From Vicugna vicugna (taxonomy: Eukaryota): a stretch of DNA of 64,000 bases. The number at the start of each line of letters is the position of its first letter. The stretch's first letter is position 1. The notes beneath the pieces are model-generated. The model saw only the letters and a program-made list of their open reading frames with translations. It did no database searches and was not told where the DNA came from. Where the stretch lies: NCBI GenBank assembly GCA_013265495.1, contig MU062133.1:10146182-10210181 (forward strand), in the 5' to 3' direction. The position numbers and the translations under genes are program-made. Shown one piece after another: positions 25,286-63,042 of this stretch.

Positions 25286-25612
25286 AAAATAACAGCTTTA
25301 TTGAGAGAGAACTCACATCCCACACAGGTCACCCATTGCAGGTGCACAATTCAGTGTTTTTTAATATAGTCACAGATACGTGCAGCCNNNNNNNNNNNNN
25401 NNNNNNNNNNNNNNNNNNNNNNNNNNNNNNNNNNNNNNNNNNNNNNNNNNNNNNNNNNNNNNNNNNNNNNNNNNNNNNNNNNNNNNNNNNNNNNNNNNNN
25501 NNNNNNNNNNNNNNNNNNNNNNNNAAATGAATGGAGTCCTATAATAGGTGGTATTTTGTGACTGGATTCTGTCACTTGGCTTAAACCAAGTACATTTTTT
25601 CAAGTTTCATCT
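25286..25612 (-). mobile_element. L1MB-like 3' end (interrupted by a gap)
   Basis: aacagctttattgagagagaactcacatcccacacaggtcacccattgcaggtgcacaattcagtgttttttaatatagtcacagatacgtgcagcc...aaatgaatggagtcctataata. Confidence 0.8.
25388..25524. other. Assembly gap (N run)
   Basis: 137 N. Confidence 1.
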
Positions 25613-32436: not shown

Positions 32437-32964
32437 ACCTGAATGTCCATCAACAGATGATTGTATAAAGAACTTATGGTATTATATATGCAATGGAATA
32501 ATACTCAGCCCCAAAAAAGAATGAAATAATGCCACTTACAGCAATGTGGATGGACCTAGAGATTATCATACTAAGTGAAGTAAGTCAGACAGAGAAAAAC
32601 AAATATCATATGATATCACTTATATGTGTAATCTTAAAAAAAGGATACAAATGAACTTATTTACAAAATAGAAACAGACTCATAGATATGGAAAACAAAC
32701 TTATGGTTACCAAAGTGTAAAGATGGTTGGTGGGGGATAAGTTAGGAGTTTGGGATTAGTAGATACAAGCTATTATATACAAAATAGATAAACAACAAGG
32801 TCCTACTATATAGCACAGGGAACCATATTTAATAGTCTGTAATAATCTATAATGAAAAAGAATATATATATTCATTATGAATATATACATAGCTGATTCA
32901 CTATGCTGTCCACCAGAAACTAACACAACATTGTGAATCAACTATACTTACAAAAAAATAAATA
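32437..32964 (+). mobile_element. 5'-truncated artiodactyl-type L1 3' end
   Basis: cctgaatgtccatcaacagatga...ggacctagagattatcatactaagtgaagtaagtcagacagag...cctactatatagcacagggaac...aatcaactatactt plus A tail; TSD AAGAGTTGATGCTT at 32420-32433 and 32965-32978. Confidence 0.93.
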
Positions 32965-36322: not shown

Positions 36323-36451
36323 NNNNNNNNNNNNNNNNNNNNNNNNNNNNNNNNNNNNNNNNNNNNNNNNNNNNNNNNNNNNNNNNNNNNNNNNNNNNNN
36401 NNNNNNNNNNNNNNNNNNNNNNNNNNNNNNNNNNNNNNNNNNNNNNNNNNN
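36323..36451. other. Assembly gap (N run)
   Basis: 129 N. Confidence 1.
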
Positions 36452-37066
36452 TGGAAAAGCCAAAAACTCTCATTTGAAAAGATACATGCACCCCAGTGTT
36501 CACAGCAACACTATTTACAGTAGTCAAAACATGGAAACAGCCTAATTGTCCATCAACAGATGAATGGATAAAGAATATGTGCTACACACACACACAGTGG
36601 GGTACTACTCACCCATAAAAAGGAATGAAATAATGACATTTGCAGCAACATAGAAATGACCTAGAGATTACCTAGTAAGTGAAGTAAGTCATACAGATAC
36701 AAACACATACCACATATGGTATCACTTATATGTGGAATCTGAAAAAAATGACATAAATGAACTTATTTACAAAATGAAAAGAGACTCAGAGACATAGAAA
36801 ACAAACTTGTCATTACTAAAGGGGAAGAGAAGGAGGAGGAAGGACAAATTAGGAGTTTGAAATTAACAGATATACACTACTGTAGATAAAATAGGTAAGC
36901 AACAAGATTCACTGTATAATACAGGGAACAGTATTCTGTATCTTGTAATGACCTATAATGAAAAACACTCTGGATTGATTGATTGATTGATTGATAATTG
37001 AATCACTTTGCTGAACACTTGAAACTAACACAACATTATACATCAACTATGCTTCAGTTTTTAAAA
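36452..37066 (+). mobile_element. Artiodactyl-type L1 3' end (ORF2 end plus UTR; 5' part lies in the gap)
   Basis: aaaagatacatgcaccccagtgttcacagcaacactatttacag...tgaatcactttgctgaacacttgaaactaacacaacattatacatcaactatgcttca; same family as 32437-32964. Confidence 0.9.
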
Positions 37067-38515: not shown

Positions 38516-38663
38516 NNNNNNNNNNNNNNNNNNNNNNNNNNNNNNNNNNNNNNNNNNNNNNNNNNNNNNNNNNNNNNNNNNNNNNNNNNNNNNNNNNNNN
38601 NNNNNNNNNNNNNNNNNNNNNNNNNNNNNNNNNNNNNNNNNNNNNNNNNNNNNNNNNNNNNNN
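38516..38663. other. Assembly gap (N run)
   Basis: 148 N. Confidence 1.
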
Positions 38664-40790: not shown

Positions 40791-41060
40791 NNNNNNNNNN
40801 NNNNNNNNNNNNNNNNNNNNNNNNNNNNNNNNNNNNNNNNNNNNNNNNNNNNNNNNNNNNNNNNNNNNNNNNNNNNNNNNNNNNNNNNNNNNNNNNNNNN
40901 NNNNNNNNNNNNNNNNNNNNNNNNNNNNNNNNNNNNNNNNNNNNNNNNNNNNNNNNNNNNNNNNNNNNNNNNNNNNNNNNNNNNNNNNNNNNNNNNNNNN
41001 NNNNNNNNNNNNNNNNNNNNNNNNNNNNNNNNNNNNNNNNNNNNNNNNNNNNNNNNNNNN
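40791..41060. other. Assembly gap (N run)
   Basis: 270 N. Confidence 1.
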
Positions 41061-53512: not shown

Positions 53513-55201
53513 GGCTCCTCTTTCTTATCCATCCCCCTTTGGCTTCCACCCCAAGGATGGACCTGTGGGCTGACATTTCAGTGCTACTTTCTCCAACACA
53601 TACAAGCTGCCACCCACTTGTCCTTAGTTCTTGCCTGTCCTGGCCACATCCTGGGGACCTTGGCAGCCCCTACCTCCTCCGGGCATCTGGGAGCTCAGAC
53701 CCCCTAGGAGGCCATGTAACCCGTGGGCTCGGGCACAGGTCCTTCAGTGGAGCTTCAGCCAAACCCTCAGCCTGGCCCGGGTATCCTTAGTACATCTCTG
53801 GTCCATTCCCTGCCCGGTCCCTGCAGCTGTTCCCCACCTTCTCCACTGTCCTAAAGTCGTCCAGCCGGCCCCGTCCACCTCGGGATCCACAAATGATCTC
53901 ACTGCTTGTGTCCCATTGAGAAATGTCTCATGGAGAACTGTGGGCAACATCTCTGTCTTTCTGGCTACCCCAACCCCTTTTCCTCCTTCTGCCTATAAAT
54001 GAGGTTGTCTGTGCTCCCTGGTTTCCCTCAGCTTTCCTGTCTCTCATCGACCCCTTTCCTCTGTCTGCATCAGCTGTCCCTGGGGCTTGATTCTGGGGCA
54101 GCACCTCTGTCCTAAGGCCCCGACCACTTCTCCAGAGTCCTGAGAATCCGTTATCCACCTGTCTTGATCTCTTCTGAGACTCAGCCTGGCCAGACCTCTA
54201 GGGGTGCCTCACCGCTCGCCCCTCCCTCGACTGTGAACCTCCGTCTTCTTCGCCTTGAGTCTGTCATCTTCCCTCCTGGATCATGAGCTTCTGGAGGACA
54301 GGGACTGTTCTCTTACCTCCCCATCATGGGATCAGATGATCTTATTCAGTTCAGAGGACATAGGACTGCTGGACAGAGTGACCTCACAGGCCGTGTAGGT
54401 TGGACAGGACCCAAGACTGGGAGACTGGCCCCAATCCACCACCTTGTCCTAAATCCACCGCTAACTCCAGGCAAGCCCCAGACAGCTTTCAGAGCCTCTG
54501 TCTCCTGTGCTGTAGGTGGAGAATAATCCCCCACCATCCTAGCTCCCAAGAGGGGCTTGGCAGCTTCAGCGGGAAAATGACGCTGCCTGGGCGGCAGTGC
54601 TCAGCCTTCGGTGAACCCTGTGGGCACCTGGGGGCCTTTAACCAATGTAACACACCTGGGTTCTTCCCCCAGACCTTCTAACTTAGCTGTTCTCATGGGG
54701 ATGGGTATCTGTGTATCCTAAAGCCTTAACCACTACTCTCAATCAAAGATATTACCAAACTCCTGGATTCTAAGCCCTGAGCAATGGAGGCGAAGGTTAC
54801 GGAGATTTGGCAAAACAGAATTCCTGGATAATATGTAATTTATCTCCTCTTTAAGATGTTCTAAAAGCCTAACCCCTGGATCTAGCCACCTGAAAGCCAG
54901 GGAACTTGGCTATGGTCCAGTGGCAACCCTGTTCATCTCGCCCCAGCCTAAAAATGCTTTTACATCAACCATACTTGTTAGAAGATCTTTTTTTTTTTCC
55001 CTATTGATCACATGGAGATGCCCACATTTAGGATTTGGGGGCAGTTAATGTTCCTCCTGACCTGGTGACCCCGTCACTGGTACCCTTGGAGAAGTGCCTC
55101 TGATCTGAGCACATATTTTCCTCCGGGGCCACTGTCAGAGTGTCTCACGTTGGATCACGTTGTAACAGATCAGCTCCTTGTTTGTTTCTTCCAGGTCTAA
55201 A

Positions 55202-55379
55202 CAGTGGCTCTCAACCCTGGCCGGATATTAAAATCACCCAGGGAAGTTCTTTAAATGCCGATATCCAGGCTACACATCAGATCTATTAGATCAAAATCTC
55301 TCCAGATGGGACGCAGGCATCAGTGTCTTTGTGACGCTCCCCAGGCAGTTCCAACAGGACGCCAAGGTCAGAGGCACCG
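55202..55379 (+). mobile_element. MER5-family MITE (MER5A1-like)
   Basis: cagtggctctcaaccctggc...aaaatcacccagggaag...atcaaaatctct...caggcatcagtgtcttt...ctccccaggcagttccaa...gccaaggtcagaggcaccg. Confidence 0.85.
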
Positions 55380-56010
55380 CCAAGCCTAGGGGTGTGACCC
55401 ACCTCTAGCAGACGTGGGGACTTCCCAGGTGTGGCTTCCCCCAGGCAGCATGCCCTGTGCCACTTCCCGCCCCTACACTTGTTTGTCTCTCTCCTGCTTT
55501 TGGTTTACATTGTCTTACAGTATCCTTTTAAGTCACCTTCAGTCCTTTCTGAACTCAGTGAGGTGAAAACAAACAGAATAGAAAGCTTCCTGCTTTTCTC
55601 TGGCTGGGCCCTGGGCACAGCTTCCGCCCCGTCAGGCATCCAAAGAGAGAGGGTTGGAGCCCCCGCTTCCCCACCTAGAGGTGCCAGGTCGGCACCCTCG
55701 GTTCTGGTAATCCCCACACTGGGGAATTACAGCCAGTTCTGCCAAGAGCTCTCCAAGGCCCGTGAGAGAGGCTGGGTCAGTTCACAGCATCTGTGTGCTG
55801 ACATGGGACTGGGGCCAAGAGGGGGCTGACGGGGTGGCCCACCAGAGCATCACTGTGCCCTGGACGGCAGCTGTGCACCCTTGTCTGCCCTCCTCCGTCC
55901 GCACAATTCGGCCCCATGCTCAACAACGTGCTGAGATCGTTGGCCATTGGCAGGAGGTGCCCTGGGGGCAGATCCCCAATTTCTGGATGCTGAGTTGTGC
56001 GGGAAGAGCA
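55350..56010 (+). repeat. Inverted repeat, left arm
   Basis: Reverse complement of 62080-62702 plus 63010-63042; also visible as identical peptide MASPRQHALCHFPPLHLFVSLLLLVYIVLQYPFKSPSVLSELSEVKTNRIESFLLFSGWALGTA in the ORFs at 55431(+) and 62360-62638(-). Confidence 0.97.
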
Positions 56011-56644
56011 CACACACAGGGAGGCAGTTCCCCTTAGCAAATGGGGGTGGGGTGGGCACACACAGCAATTCACTCTTGCTGCAAAACCTCGTTTGGCACC
56101 TGGGCTAGAAATAGCTTATCTGCAAAACCTCAGAGTTTATTTTTGTGTCCAAGTTTGATTTTCCAAGTGACCTGTCTCCTTCCTTCCCTTGCACCTGCCC
56201 CGGAGGCCAGGGCTGCCGGGAACAGTTGTGAGTCTGTGCCCTACAGGAGGGCATCTGGCTCGGGGAGCATGGGAGCTGACACCCAGCCCAGGCTCTGCAA
56301 GCTTTTCTGTGCCCTGTGAGTGCTCAGAGGGAGGAGAGCCTCTTTCTAATTTGTGCAGAAATGCTGAATAGAGTGGTAGTGGCCCTGCCAGAGTTGTGCT
56401 CGGGGAGAGCATCACACACACTTTTGTCCAGTGACCGTTTAAGGACGCTCCTGAATATGTGGGCTCCTGTCTCTTACTGATGATCTCATATATTTGCAGG
56501 TCACTCAGAAGAACTTTTAAGCTTTTGTCTTCTAATCATAAATTCTCCCTTTCTCATGCAACATGACAGATAGAGTTAGAAGCACTAGGGCTGTAGGAGG
56601 AATACTCCCAGCACATAGTAAAACGAAATGGTATTCCCTAACAC

Positions 56645-57260
56645 AGTCATTCATTCAAGCACTTGTTGGCAGCTACATTGTATATTGTTCTAGGTCTGAA
56701 ATCCAGAGAGGTCTGACAAAAGCCAGTCCTCAAGGAGTTGGCAGTCCAGGAGGGAGACCAGCAAGCAAATACATTCTTATAATACATTGTAATAAATGCA
56801 ACAATAGGAGATTACAGAATGTGCTCTGGATGAACTCATTCACTCAACAAATATTTCTTGAGCACCTGCTCTATGCCAGGCATTATTCCAGGCACTGGAG
56901 ATACAGCAGTGACCATGAGACCAAATTCCTGAACCAGAGCTCACATGTGAGGCCACGAGAGCACTCAGCAACTCACTTAGTTTGGTCAAAACCACAGGCT
57001 TCCAAAAAGAGGAAACTTCAAGCTGGAAAGTAGCATGTGTGTATCTGTCTGTCTGTGTATATGTGTGCATGCAGGCAACAGGAACAACTTGTGCAAAAGC
57101 CTGAAGATATGCAAGGACAGGAGAGCTCAGACCATAACTGCTAAGGGAGACCTAAGCGTTGGGAGATGTGGCTGGAAAGGTAATTGGGTCTCAGCTGTGA
57201 TGGGCATTGAGTGCAACGCTAAGCCTCCAGAACCCACCCTCTTGGATAATGGGAACAGAG
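56645..57260 (-). mobile_element. Two adjacent L2 3' fragments
   Basis: Antisense L2 tails cattcattcaagcacttg (~56648) and ctcattcactcaacaaatatttcttgagcacctgctctatgccaggc (~56836). Confidence 0.8.
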
Positions 57261-57544
57261 CTGAGGGCTCACGGAGCACCGGTCTGAGACCACTCTCACA
57301 GCCAGGCTCCCCGTGCACTCCCTGACCCCCAGAGACTCTAGCAGCCTCTTGCTCTGGGCAGCCGCTGCCCCAACCCCACTTCGTTAGAATGTCCAAGGTT
57401 AAGATCGTATGACTTACTTTACCTCCTCCTATGACCCAGTGCTTTTAGTTCTCAGAGTAAATACTTCCACATAATTTCATCTACTTGGTCAAGAAGGAGA
57501 CCCTAGGAAGGAAACAGAGGGGGATTATTGCTGCCATTAATTAT

Positions 57545-57660
57545 ACCAAACAACACGCTGAGGTCCAGAGAGGGCCAGTGTCTTGCCTGAGGTCACACAG
57601 CCCATGAGAGCAGGTGGGAACTAGAGTCCTTGTTTCCTGATTCCCAATCCAGAGCCCCTG
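57545..57660 (-). mobile_element. MIR fragment
   Basis: gctgaggtccagagagggccagtgtcttgcctgaggtcacacagc...cctgattcccaatccagagc. Confidence 0.75.
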
Positions 57661-58132
57661 TGGCCTCCGTGTCAACTGCCACTCCTTCAGTTGATGCCTC
57701 GGAGCCCTGAGTGTCAGTCTGCACCTGCCTGTCTTCTGCAAACGTTAGTTGAGCGCCTACCGTGTGTCAAGCCCAGCTCTGAGTGGCCATCCTCTGGGCT
57801 TCAATGTAGCACCACCCACACCCAGGAGGGAAACTGGAAGAATCACATCTGGGTTGTCCTTCCTTCCACCCACCGTGACCCAAGAGGCCGACGGACCTCA
57901 GGCAGCCAGGCCCGGGCTGTCACCCACCTGTGCCAAGTTGAACAGAGACCTTTGCCACCGGGAGACCACGCCATTCACTCCTGCATCCTCTCATCCAGGC
58001 CACTCGGAGGCGCATTAATTACAGCTGCTGATACATGTTTTCACTCCTACTTGTAAGGGAGCTGGAAGCTAAAAGAATGGGGGAGACTTAAGCCTCGTTC
58101 AGGGGGCTGGAGCTTCCCCGTGTGAGACAGAT

Positions 58133-58290
58133 GCAGCCTAGCAACCCTCTCGGGCCCTTCTTTTGATTTGTAGCAACTCATTTAGATAAAAGCATCTGGT
58201 TCGTGAGGTAGCAACAACACCACAAAATCATTAAAAGCATATTTCTGCTTTCACTAAGTAACCTAGTAACAGCGCAGCAGGTAGCAATTA
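58133..58290. promoter_or_regulatory. RFX X-box cluster (candidate enhancer)
   Basis: GTAACCTAGTAAC (58258-58270) fits GTNRCC-N-RGYAAC exactly; GCAGCCTAGCAAC (58133-58145) has one mismatch; GTAGCAAC at 58170 and 58208; GTAGCAAT at 58281. Confidence 0.55.
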
Positions 58291-58669
58291 ACCCGGCCCC
58301 CTCCTCCAGGTACACAGGCAGGTGCTGAACGTGGGAAATGAAAGTCAGACTATGGAGAGGGCCTATCGTCCAGGGTCCCTTCTCAGATCAGCGCTGAGTC
58401 TCACAGATGTGCACGAGGCCGCCCCACCCGTCAGCCAGAGAGCCTCGCCCTCCCATTAGTGCGGACAGGAGGCACCCTCCCTCTCCAACCCAGAATAAAC
58501 AGTGCAATGATTTATTTAGCACCAGTTCAAGGCTTTCTAAAACACACTCGGAGTGCTCTGCATCTTGAGCAGGTGAGCACAGAGCTGCACCGCTGGCTTT
58601 GTGAATCAGATAAAGTAAGTCTGACCCCGGACCAGGTAGCCAAACTCGCCTCCCGTGACCTCCACTCCA

Positions 58670-58734
58670 ACACACGTGCACGTGCGTGCACACGCACGCA
58701 CACACACGCACACACACACATGCACACACACACG
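58670..58734. repeat. Mixed (CA/CG/TG)n alternating purine-pyrimidine tract
   Basis: 65 bp of uninterrupted R/Y alternation. Confidence 0.95.
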
Positions 58735-59647
58735 GCCTCCGCTCCCATCTAGACAGACCCGGTGCTCCTCACTGACCCTGCTCGTGTGCGTCACACCTCT
58801 GGGCATTTGTCCTATACTAAGCCTGCCTCTCCTGTCCCTATGCATCTCCTGGCAAAGTGCTCCCAGGTCACCCACCCCTGGGAATTTTCTCTTCTCTGAC
58901 TTCCTGATGCTGTTACTCTCCCCAGCACCCATCCGGTTCTTTTTTGGGTCAAGTGCAATCCTTTCACTGTCCGCGGTGCTGAAGGCTCATCCCGGGCCCC
59001 TGTGAGCTCAGAGCTGAGCACATATTAACACTGTAAAGGAACTGATCATGGGAAGTCAACTCACATGGCCTCCAGTGTGGCTTCTGGTCCCCCAGGCCCT
59101 CTGTTTCCCTGCTGTCACTGAACACTCTCACCTGACACCTGGCTGTTTTCTTGTCTGCCTTGGGAGACAGCTAGGAGTCTGCTAAGGGCAAGGGCTGTGT
59201 CTCAGTCACTGGGTCCCTCCCCAAAGCCTGGCACAAAGAAGGCCCTGGAACACATGGGATGAGTAAGTGACCTGTGTGCCTCAGAAGCATCTCATTTAAC
59301 CTGCCTCACCTGTGTGTGCTCAGGGCCCTGCCACACCCATCAGAGCAGCTCACAGCCGCCTACTGTAGGGCAGTGAGGGCAGTGCACTGGCCCAGCCCTT
59401 CTGAGGCCACCACCCCTGGGGACACCACGCACCCAGGCCAGAGCTCTCCTTTCTGCTCTTCTGAGCACTGTCCCCAGACCAGGAGGAAGACAGGCTCCCT
59501 GAATCCTGCTGGAAACCAGGCTCTCAATATTCTTACTTTAACATTTAAAACTGTTTTGGACAGGTGCGTCTCATGTTCAGAGGGGCCTCACAGCCTTCAC
59601 TCATTTGTTCATCATTCATTCATTCATTCATCTGGGGAATGTTTACA

Positions 59648-59880
59648 GTGAGCAGCATAGTGTAGGTCAGGAGCACAGATGGTGGAACCAGCCCTGCCCT
59701 TTACCAGCCGGGTGACTTCCGGCACACTGTTGAATCTCTCATGCCTCAATTTCTTCACCTGCAAAATAAGGATTATAACTATACCTCCCTCACAAGGTGG
59801 TTACAGGATTTAGTTAACATAAGGCAGCACCGAGAGCAGTGCACGAAACATAGTCCAGTACAAGGGTGTGCTATTATTAT
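59648..59880 (+). mobile_element. MIR SINE (near full length)
   Basis: gagcagcatagtgtaggtcaggagcacag...ctctcatgcctcaatttcttcacctgcaaaataaggattataactatacctccctcacaagg...gctattattat. Confidence 0.85.
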
Positions 59881-60789
59881 CCTAAGGGCTAGGACCCCAG
59901 CCAAGACATGGACTTAAATCATGCTGTCCTCAGGACCAAATGCACCTCCAAGGAAGGTGTCGGTGTGCCCACCCCCTGCACCCCTCCTTCATGCCAGTCA
60001 CCCGGTGGCCTCTGCTTGCTGAACACATCCAGTCAGCAGGGGACTTCGGCTCCCAGTGAGGCAGCCCTCCTCAACCCACAGGAATCCCAAACAGCCACTG
60101 GGCTGCAAACTGATTCTCTGCAGACAACGGCAGAAGGTCCAGGGGCCCCTCCTTACTTCTGGTGGGGAATCTCCCAGCACCCATCACAGCCCCGCACTTC
60201 CTCACCCCCGAAGAGGACTTGAACTCCTGCTCAGCCCACAGCTGCCCCAAACTGTGGATGAATGACCATCAGAGACTTTGGGGCTCGTACCACCCAGGGC
60301 TGCCACTGGCCGGCTTTGGGACCTGGAAGCATGTCCCTGCCTCCTCTTTGGATCTCAGTTTCTTTATCTGTGTCATGAGGGGAGTGGATTCATGATTGAT
60401 CCCCAAGGGGCCAGCCAGGCTCTGTCCGGAGGAGTGACACTCTGGATGTGGCCACATGGGGGCTTCTGGGACAACACCCCAGTTAGCACTGTGGCTTCAG
60501 AAGGTATGTCAGCATGTCCTTGGGGCATCTGTCATTAACAATTATGAAGCCATTATCTGGTAAATAATTCATAACCCAAGAGATGGGATAAGCCGCCAAT
60601 AAACAATAATCCGTTTAGAACGAGGCTTGGCGGGGGCAGTGCATCAACGGGGATGCCACTCCATCCTCACCACTGGGGTCCTGCTAAGAGCCCGGCTCGG
60701 GCCTTGCCTCTCTGAAGCCCTCCCTCCCCACCCAAAGGCATCACCCACTCCCCTAGCCCAGCAGGATTTAGTCTCTGGAGTAACAGGGA

Positions 60790-61020
60790 TAGGTATTGAG
60801 TGTTGACAGTGGGCCGGGGCTCTGCTAAAGGATTTCCGTGTGCTCTCTCCCCGAATTCTCCCACCAACCCTATGGACGGGGGCACTGTTATTGTCCACCT
60901 TTACAGAGAAGTAAACCAAGGTCCAGAGAGGCTGAATAACTTACCCCAGGTCAGTGTGACTTGGGAGCTCTGCCTCTGCCCCAGCGTGTCCCACACTCTC
61001 TTCTGCCATGAGTTTTAACC
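60790..61020 (-). mobile_element. MIR SINE
   Basis: gtattgagtgttgacagtgggccgggg...aaccctatggacgggggcactgttattgtccacctttacagagaagtaaaccaaggtccagagaggctgaataacttacccca. Confidence 0.8.
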
Positions 61021-62079
61021 TCTCACTTGTCTGGCCTTGGTCTCCGTGTGACCTAGACTCGGAGCCCGGGAGGCCTGTGCTCCCCTTCTGTCTCCCTCAC
61101 CCAGGGCAGGGCCCCGGAGGTGTCTCCTAGGGCCTGCAGACCACAGCCTCACCGGCCGGCTGGCTGGTTAGTGATGCCGTTAGGCTTCTTAGTGGTGTTT
61201 GGAGGCCAAACCAAGGCCCCTGGGGCGTGGAGTGGGAGGGGTGTCTTCAGGACACTGTCTGAACGCCCCGTCTTCTCAGGGGCCTGGCGCACTTCCCCAT
61301 ATCAGGGAGGTGCTGCAGCCTTCTGGCCACGTTCCTGTGGAGACCTCTGTCCTGGGGAAGGAGTTCTGCGCCCAGATGGTGTGAACAGGACTGCGTGGGT
61401 TGGTTTGTGTTTAGTGTCTGGTTGGCTCTGCCAAGAGCTGCTCCTCTCCCGCCCACTCTGTCACCGTACCAGCTAGGGCAGCTGCTCGCCCTCTGTCTGC
61501 AGGACCATTTCAAAGACCTGCCCAGAGGCCCTCAGTCAGGGAGGGACCCCAAGGAAGAGGAGGGGAGAGCTCTCTCACTGCTAAGAAGGTCCATTCTCGG
61601 CCCTCCCCTGGGTGGGGCGCATCAGCACCCACACGCCAGCCTCCCCAAGGCCTGCTGTCAGGAACGATCTCGGGCGCACTTCTCAGACCACAGAGCCACC
61701 CTGAGTTGGGAGCTGTGAGGAACAGGGTGGAGTTGCTGGATGCTTGGCCCTGTAATGGTCACATCTGGAACGTGGCACAGACCTTGCGGCCAGCCCCTGT
61801 GGTGGAAGAAGCCACAGCGGTTCCCCACGCGTGCTCATTTCTCAATAACTGTGGTAACCAGCCCCGGGGGAGGCCCCTTTTAGCCTTCTGACCTCTCCTA
61901 CTCTAGAATGGGTGGTCAGGACTGGGAGACACCAAGGCCAGGAGAATGGGTCCCTTGCTGCTTTCTAGAACAGCTTGAAACAGACAGAAACTCCGCATCT
62001 CCTTTGAGAAGGATTTCCCGAAGGAGGCACCAGTCCTGCCCTGCTGGTCAGACCCCTGCACTGACACACGTCCCCAGGC

Positions 62080-63042
62080 CCCTTCCTGAACAACCTTGTA
62101 CCCAGAAATGCGGGATCCACCCCGGGGCATCGCCTGCCTTTGGCCAATGATCTCAGCACGTTGTTCAGCATGGGACCGAATTGTGCGGACGGAGGAGGGC
62201 AGACCAGGGTGCACAGCTGCCGTCCTGGGCACAGTGATGCTCTGGCAGGTCTTGGCCCCGGTCCCGTGTCAGCACACAGATGCTGTGAACTGACCCAGCC
62301 TCTCTCACGGGCCTTGGAGAGCTCTTGGCAGAACTGGCTGTAATTCCCCAGTGTGGGGATTACCAGAACCGAGGGTGCCGACCTGGCACCTGTGGGTGGG
62401 GAAGAGGGGCTCCAGCCCTCCCTCTTTGGATGCCTGACGGGGCGGGAGCTGTGCCCAGGGCCCAGCCAGAGAAAAGCAGGAAGCTTTCTATTCTGTTTGT
62501 TTTCACCTCACTGAGTTCAGAAAGGACTGAAGGTGACTTAAAAGGATACTGTAAGACAATGTAAACCAAAAGCAGGAGAGAGACAAACAAGTGTAGGGGC
62601 GGGAAGTGGCACAGGGCATGCTGCCTCGGGGAAGCCACACCTGGGAAGTCCCCATGTCTGCTAGAGGTGGGTCACAGATTTACCTCCAGGCTTGGCAGTG
62701 CCTTTTTTTTTATTTTATTTTTTATTGAAGTGTAGTTGATTTACAATGTTAATTTCAGGTGTACAGTAAAGCGATTCAGTTATACATATGCATGCATAGA
62801 TGTCTTTTCAGAACTTTCCATTATATGTTATTGTAAGAAATTGAACATGGTTCCCTGTGCTATACAGTAGGTCCTTGTGTACACATAGTAATGTGTATCT
62901 GTTAATCCCAAACTCCTGATTTATCCCTCCCTCGCCGTTTCCCCTTGGGTAACCATAGTTTGTTTTCTATGTCCCTGAGTCTGTTTTGGGTTTGTAAATA
63001 CAATTTGTATTGGCAGTGCCTTTGACCTTGCCTCCTGTTGGA
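62080..63042 (-). repeat. Inverted repeat, right arm (interrupted near its outer tip by L1)
   Basis: 62080-62702 pairs with 55373-56010; after the L1, 63010-63042 (ttggcagtgcctttgaccttgcctcctgttgga) pairs with 55350-55382. Confidence 0.95.
62703..63009 (-). mobile_element. 5'-truncated artiodactyl-type L1 3' end
   Basis: Poly-T then ttattgaagtgtagttgatttacaatg...ggttccctgtgctatacagtaggtcc...ttttctatgtccctgagtctgtttt; TSD TTGGCAGTGCC(TTT) at 62692 and 63010. Confidence 0.95.

Follow-up and report, generated by a model that had tools for sequence, protein, structure and literature searches.

In the 64,000-nucleotide stretch of the Vicugna vicugna genome analysed here (assembly GCA_013265495.1, contig MU062133.1, positions 10,146,182 to 10,210,181; hereafter the window, with positions counted from its first letter), two arms of about 0.66 kb face each other in opposite orientation across a spacer of 6,075 bp. 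The arms are a genuine two-copy inverted duplication and not members of a dispersed family. The borders of both copies can be given exactly, the duplication preceded the insertion of a retroposon into one arm, both arms occur in each of the four organisms compared, and the differences between the arms are stable among these organisms. Taken together, we consider it probable that the repeat is a small, old and stable duplication of ordinary non-coding mammalian DNA, that is, a fixed relic with no active switch.

Layout and borders of the inverted repeat

The left arm was compared with the whole window by blastn and gave one other match (55372-56006 against 62703-62082, 90.5% identity over 641 columns, E = 0); the 64 kb contain no further copy of the arm. 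A repeat search of the window returned three collinear inverted pairs, 55393-55663/62406-62676 (98%), 55661-55820/62250-62409 (97%) and 55842-55967/62120-62245 (92%). By local alignment, the pairing reached 55338-56006 against 63048-62082 once an insert of 304 bp had been taken out of the right arm, and it was secure from 55351/63042, the arms measuring 656-669 bp without the insert. Past the arm ends, the flanks showed no excess likeness over shuffled sequence (outer score of 10 vs. 9.0 ± 1.1, inner score of 13 vs. 10.9 ± 1.3). These borders confirmed the inverted repeat that an initial annotation had proposed, with ~650-bp arms and a ~6-kb spacer, its coordinates being off by at most about 12 bases. 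The additional right-arm piece that it had placed at 63010-63042 also proved real, pairing with the outer end of the left arm after removal of the insert.

The insert is an A-tailed retroposon found in the right arm only (Table 1), and its flanks form a perfect 14-bp target-site duplication (AAAGGCACTGCCAA on the - strand; 62692-62705 and 63010-63023). Since it lies in one arm only and its target-site duplication is intact, the retroposon was inserted after the duplication. It looks artiodactyl or camelid-like. Two further copies of the same ~300-bp A-tailed family occur in the window, at 32658-32962 and 36764-37056, each about 69% alike.

The outer 35-48 bases of both arms correspond to the 3' tip of another repeat, which we take to resemble a miniature inverted-repeat transposable element (MITE). 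The head of this element (55199-55245) recruited several other contigs in each of the four short-read runs described below, with a depth about 4 times single copy, which indicates that the element is dispersed. Terminal inverted repeats were not detected in it by the repeat search. The right side has no more than the tip, without any likeness to the remainder of the element further out. As the element carries on beyond the arm border at the left arm only, the left copy is parental at the outer edge and the right copy derived; the left arm is therefore the likely parental copy. The initial annotation had described a 30-bp MER5 tip in the arms; the tip does belong to a dispersed element, for which MER5 is a putative name.

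Table 1. Coordinates in the window of the inverted repeat, of the elements that it contains or adjoins, and of the segments of the left arm as aligned with the right arm.
Feature	Position	Strand	Description
MITE-like dispersed repeat	55199-55385	+	Spans the outer edge of the left arm without a break
Left arm	55338-56006	+	Likely parental copy; secure pairing from 55351
Arm segment, outer	55351-55392		5 mismatches, two indels (1 and 6 bp); mismatch about 12%, identity about 88%
Arm segment, centre	55393-55820		428 bp; 11 mismatches plus 1-bp and 6-bp indels; mismatch 2.6%, identity about 97%
Longest perfect block common to the arms	55443-55622		Window, 180 bp; run X1, 208 bp (55415-55622), with the right-arm letter at 55442
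Second perfect block	55679-55803		125 bp; word depth 34.8, 13.7, 9.6 and 16.4 (X1, X14, X5, X8), about 1.3-2 times single copy
Arm segment, indel	55821-55837		17-bp indel, in the left arm and not in the right
Arm segment	55838-55962		125 bp; 11 mismatches; mismatch 8.8%, identity 91%
Arm segment, innermost	55963-56006		44 bp; 13 mismatches, one 1-bp indel; mismatch about 30%, identity about 70%
Spacer	56007-62081		6,075 bp; CpG-poor, non-coding; MIR-core-like pair, short microsatellite
Right arm, inner segment	62082-62705	-	Partner of 55372-56006
A-tailed retroposon	62706-63009	-	304 bp; short interspersed nuclear element or short 3' end of a long interspersed nuclear element; right arm only
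Right arm, outer segment	63010-63048	-	Partner of 55338/55351-55371; truncated tip of the element that is whole on the left; 88% over 34 bp

The two arms in short-read data of four organisms

We have compared positions 55000-56084 with short-read Logan contigs from four runs, X1, X5, X8 and X14, representing organisms A, B, D and E, respectively, which are very close relatives judging by the few other differences seen. Built from 31-letter words, these contigs stop within the perfect blocks of 180-208 bp and 125 bp. They showed no alternative junction, although an exchange within a block makes no new words and would leave no such trace, and the sampling of copy number covers words shared at high identity only. 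In X1, the 208-nt contig of the longest block (55415-55622) had a word depth of 39 and the 125-nt contig of the second block (55679-55803) a depth of 34.8, compared with 17-20 for the single-copy flanks. The 125-bp block reached a depth of 13.7 in X14 (flanks at 6-8.7) and 16.4 in X8 (flanks at 10-13), the signal being weaker in X5 (9.6 vs. 6.3-8.3, about 1.3-1.5 times single copy).

The two arm versions could be told apart by their contigs. Across 55593-55708, each of the four runs contained two separate contigs, one matching the left arm with 0 differences and the other carrying six right-arm letters, joined by a 1-bp gap in A, B and E. In all four runs, a long contig with right-arm letters and the 17-bp deletion matched 55774-55967, and this contig ran on into the sequence at 62119 downward in X1, X5 and X14, the runs for which its loose end was listed. 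The blastn search and the word depths supported a copy number of two, which excludes a repeat family; apart from the MER5 tip, the initial annotation had recognised none in the arms.

The local alignment of the left and right arms listed 44 differences, which were unevenly spread (Table 1), and the contrast between the centre and the inner end was significant (Fisher p = 0.004 and 4e-7). Opposite 55393, the right arm has 6 extra bp. The arm-specific letters listed at 55623-55678 and 55804-55921, together with the 17-bp indel, did not differ among A, B, D and E, with the exception of the 1-bp indel at 55660, which D lacks. The arm-specific letters were also unchanged across the four organisms in the inner part, which the right-arm contig covers to 55967. 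Since the four organisms have these arm-specific differences in common, the differences and the duplication itself predate their split, and the unchanged letters indicate that no arm-to-arm exchange has occurred in those parts since then.

No sign of ongoing exchange (concerted evolution) was found among the four organisms, with only position 55442 varying between individuals. This position is C in the window and in X5 (B), whereas X1 (A), X8 (D) and X14 (E) read G there, as in the right arm. We also observed two private changes in X8 (D), T>G at 55501 and A>T at 55509, 8 bases apart and within a stretch over which the two arms of the window are identical; if carried by both arms, they would represent a conversion signature. 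Mammalian neutral rates are 1-2.2e-9 per site per year. A divergence of 2.6% to about 6% suggests, with a wide error, that the duplication may be several to some tens of millions of years old.

Content of the spacer

The initial annotation had regarded the spacer as a carrier of candidate enhancers, with an RFX cluster and a SOX/FOX/homeobox block. The SOX, FOX and homeobox core motifs occurred at 0.66, 1.32 and 0.33 per kb in the spacer vs. 0.86, 1.61 and 0.31 per kb outside it, so that the proposed block showed no enrichment. As to the RFX cluster, what remained was a weak excess of half-sites, 1.8 per kb in the spacer vs. 1.2 elsewhere in the window, together with one X-box-like site (58258). 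The sequence, in which nothing identifies an enhancer or a target gene, does not support the regulatory side of the earlier proposal.

No Rfam family was found in the whole window and no Pfam family in 20 open reading frames (ORFs) of the 39-64 kb region, 10 of which lie at 51-64 kb, so that these ORFs point to no neighbouring gene; the exact-protein look-up of one spacer ORF returned no record. The core of the arm folded no better than its shuffles (z = -0.16). There was no sustained CpG island in the spacer, where one 400-bp bin, at 58401, was above threshold. This bin, the only one in the spacer with a CpG observed/expected ratio above 0.6, overlaps a short and impure CA-type microsatellite at 58689-58733. 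The spacer also contains a 35-bp direct pair (57561-57595 and 60919-60953, 74% alike), which resembles the MIR core and is presumably made of two old MIR fragments. Elsewhere in the window there are four runs of N of 129-270 bases (25388-25524, 36323-36451, 38516-38663 and 40791-41060), the second of them directly after a CRE-like and E-box-like stretch ending in ATG.

Origin and stability of the duplication

The stable relic that we favour would have arisen when about 0.66 kb of sequence, from 55338/55351 onward within the 3' tip of an older MITE-like element, was copied in opposite orientation to a place 6.1 kb away. This may have occurred by a templated inverted insertion, through a replicative template switch or templated repair synthesis, or the copy may have been left behind when the spacer was inverted once, the break at its left end being staggered. 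The retroposon entered the right copy later. By the time of the common ancestor of the four organisms, the repeat and nearly all of the arm-specific differences seen today were in place, and the repeat has remained unchanged since. The two routes fit the tested evidence equally well and differ in the orientation of the spacer relative to the ancestor. We infer this mechanism of origin, as we do the neutrality of the repeat and the fixed orientation of its spacer.

The birth of the repeat together with an inversion, through a staggered break at one end, fill-in and end-joining, concerns its origin and is compatible with its present stability; we regard it as possible but doubtful. Ranz et al. 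(2007, PMC1885836) showed that a staggered break may leave an inverted duplication at the breakpoint of an inversion, and the form of the repeat, in which a formerly unique sequence is duplicated in reverse at both ends of a segment, fits such an event. The left outer junction looks ancestral, with the MITE-like element continuous across it, as the model predicts (PMC1885836), but the same junction is expected from a templated inverted insertion 6 kb away, and the model has been established in Drosophila and not in mammals. What sets the model apart is what it predicts for the other junctions, of which the right inner one would be ancestral, while the left inner and right outer ones would formerly have lain next to each other; no repeat element spanning these points was found. 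The locus shares with the Drosophila case the inverted duplication of non-repetitive sequence at the segment ends and one ancestral-looking outer junction, and differs from it in having one duplicated block, whereas duplications in that case are often present at both breakpoints (PMC1885836).

That the arms are instead an active substrate for intrachromatid non-allelic homologous recombination (NAHR), which would make the 6.1-kb spacer a polymorphic or recurrent inversion as suggested by the initial annotation, appears unlikely to us. Human inversions mediated by NAHR have repeats of 654 bp to 24.2 kb with >90% identity and are mostly recurrent (Giner-Delgado et al. 2019, PMC6748972). With arms of 0.66 kb that are >90% alike and only 6 kb apart, the present repeat lies within the known inversion-mediating range, at its very bottom, and its centre of high identity and the variable site 55442 would fit occasional exchange. 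However, the longest perfect block, of 180-208 bp, is below the 300-500 bp of uninterrupted identity estimated for human meiotic NAHR, close repeats needing less (PMC2583991), and the arm-specific letters of the middle and inner blocks, unchanged in four organisms, argue that no conversion has taken place there since the split. In mouse cells, intrachromosomal exchange was 20-fold lower with 134 bp of uninterrupted homology than with 232 bp (PMC2583991); at 180 bp (window) and 208 bp (X1), the uninterrupted identity of the arms falls between these two lengths. A recurrent flip of the spacer through exchange in this very block seems to us a little less likely still. If true, it would rank the locus with the NAHR inversions that have the shortest arms known from mammals other than humans, with an arm length at the known lower limit. 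Like the HsInv human inversions (Aguado et al. 2014, PMC3961182; Giner-Delgado et al. 2019, PMC6748972), in which the copies enclose from a few to hundreds of kb, the locus has two oppositely oriented copies of otherwise unique sequence; its arms, at ~0.66 kb and >90% identity, equal the lower limit reported for that set (654 bp, >90%), and their identity peaks in one internal block. In the HsInv set, both orientations have been shown in populations and exchange has been mapped to stretches of very high identity (e.g., 782 bp at 99.9%), whereas the arms described here are known in one orientation, that of the assembly, have a longest perfect block of 180-208 bp and carry differences that are stable in four organisms. 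On the sequence data available, the indirect evidence leans against an active switch.

A role at the RNA level would require both arms to be in one primary transcript, where they could pair into a duplex of about 0.6 kb and loop out the spacer, with adenosine-to-inosine editing or back-splicing as possible outcomes. The geometry, with perfect complementary blocks of 180 bp and 125 bp lying 6 kb apart, is all that speaks for it, and with no exon, Rfam or protein family in the spacer and an arm devoid of structure above that of shuffles, we judge such a role very unlikely. An assembly artefact, in which a single arm would appear as two, had been raised by the initial annotation and is excluded by the detection of both arm versions and of roughly double depth in four independent short-read data sets. 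A DNA transposon with long terminal inverted repeats conflicts with arms that begin inside an older element continuing only leftward, with two copies instead of many, and with spacer ORFs that include none that is transposase-like and none with a Pfam family. We attach hardly any weight to these last two explanations, even jointly.

Several points weigh against the reading of an old and stable relic. The orientation of the spacer was observed in the assembled individual only, the left inner junction is known from the assembly alone, and the comparison was confined to organisms that all carry the duplication. Moreover, the uneven identity (mismatch of 2.6% in the centre, of 8.8-30% at the inner end) does not agree with one neutral clock for the arms, and an added ingredient is needed, either an old arm-to-arm conversion of the centre or error-prone synthesis at the inner junction during the duplication. 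The variation at 55442 could reflect conversion at one site, or a polymorphism that several species labels have in common, perhaps owing to hybridisation. The uneven identity points at most to an old exchange between the arms.

The repeat is a new instance of a well-known and common structure, the small inverted low-copy repeat in a mammalian genome. As in mammalian segmental duplications and low-copy repeats, there are two copies, these are not derived from a transposon, and one of them is marked by a later retroposon; the uneven identity would also fit past gene conversion. With 656-669 bp, the arms are below the 1 kb that is the customary threshold for a segmental duplication. At this locus, the depth of short-read contigs and the variants specific to each arm cleanly establish an assembled inverted repeat as real and as older than a split of species. 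In addition, its arm borders, perfect blocks and diagnostic variants make it a defined candidate site for long-read surveys of small inversions in these animals.

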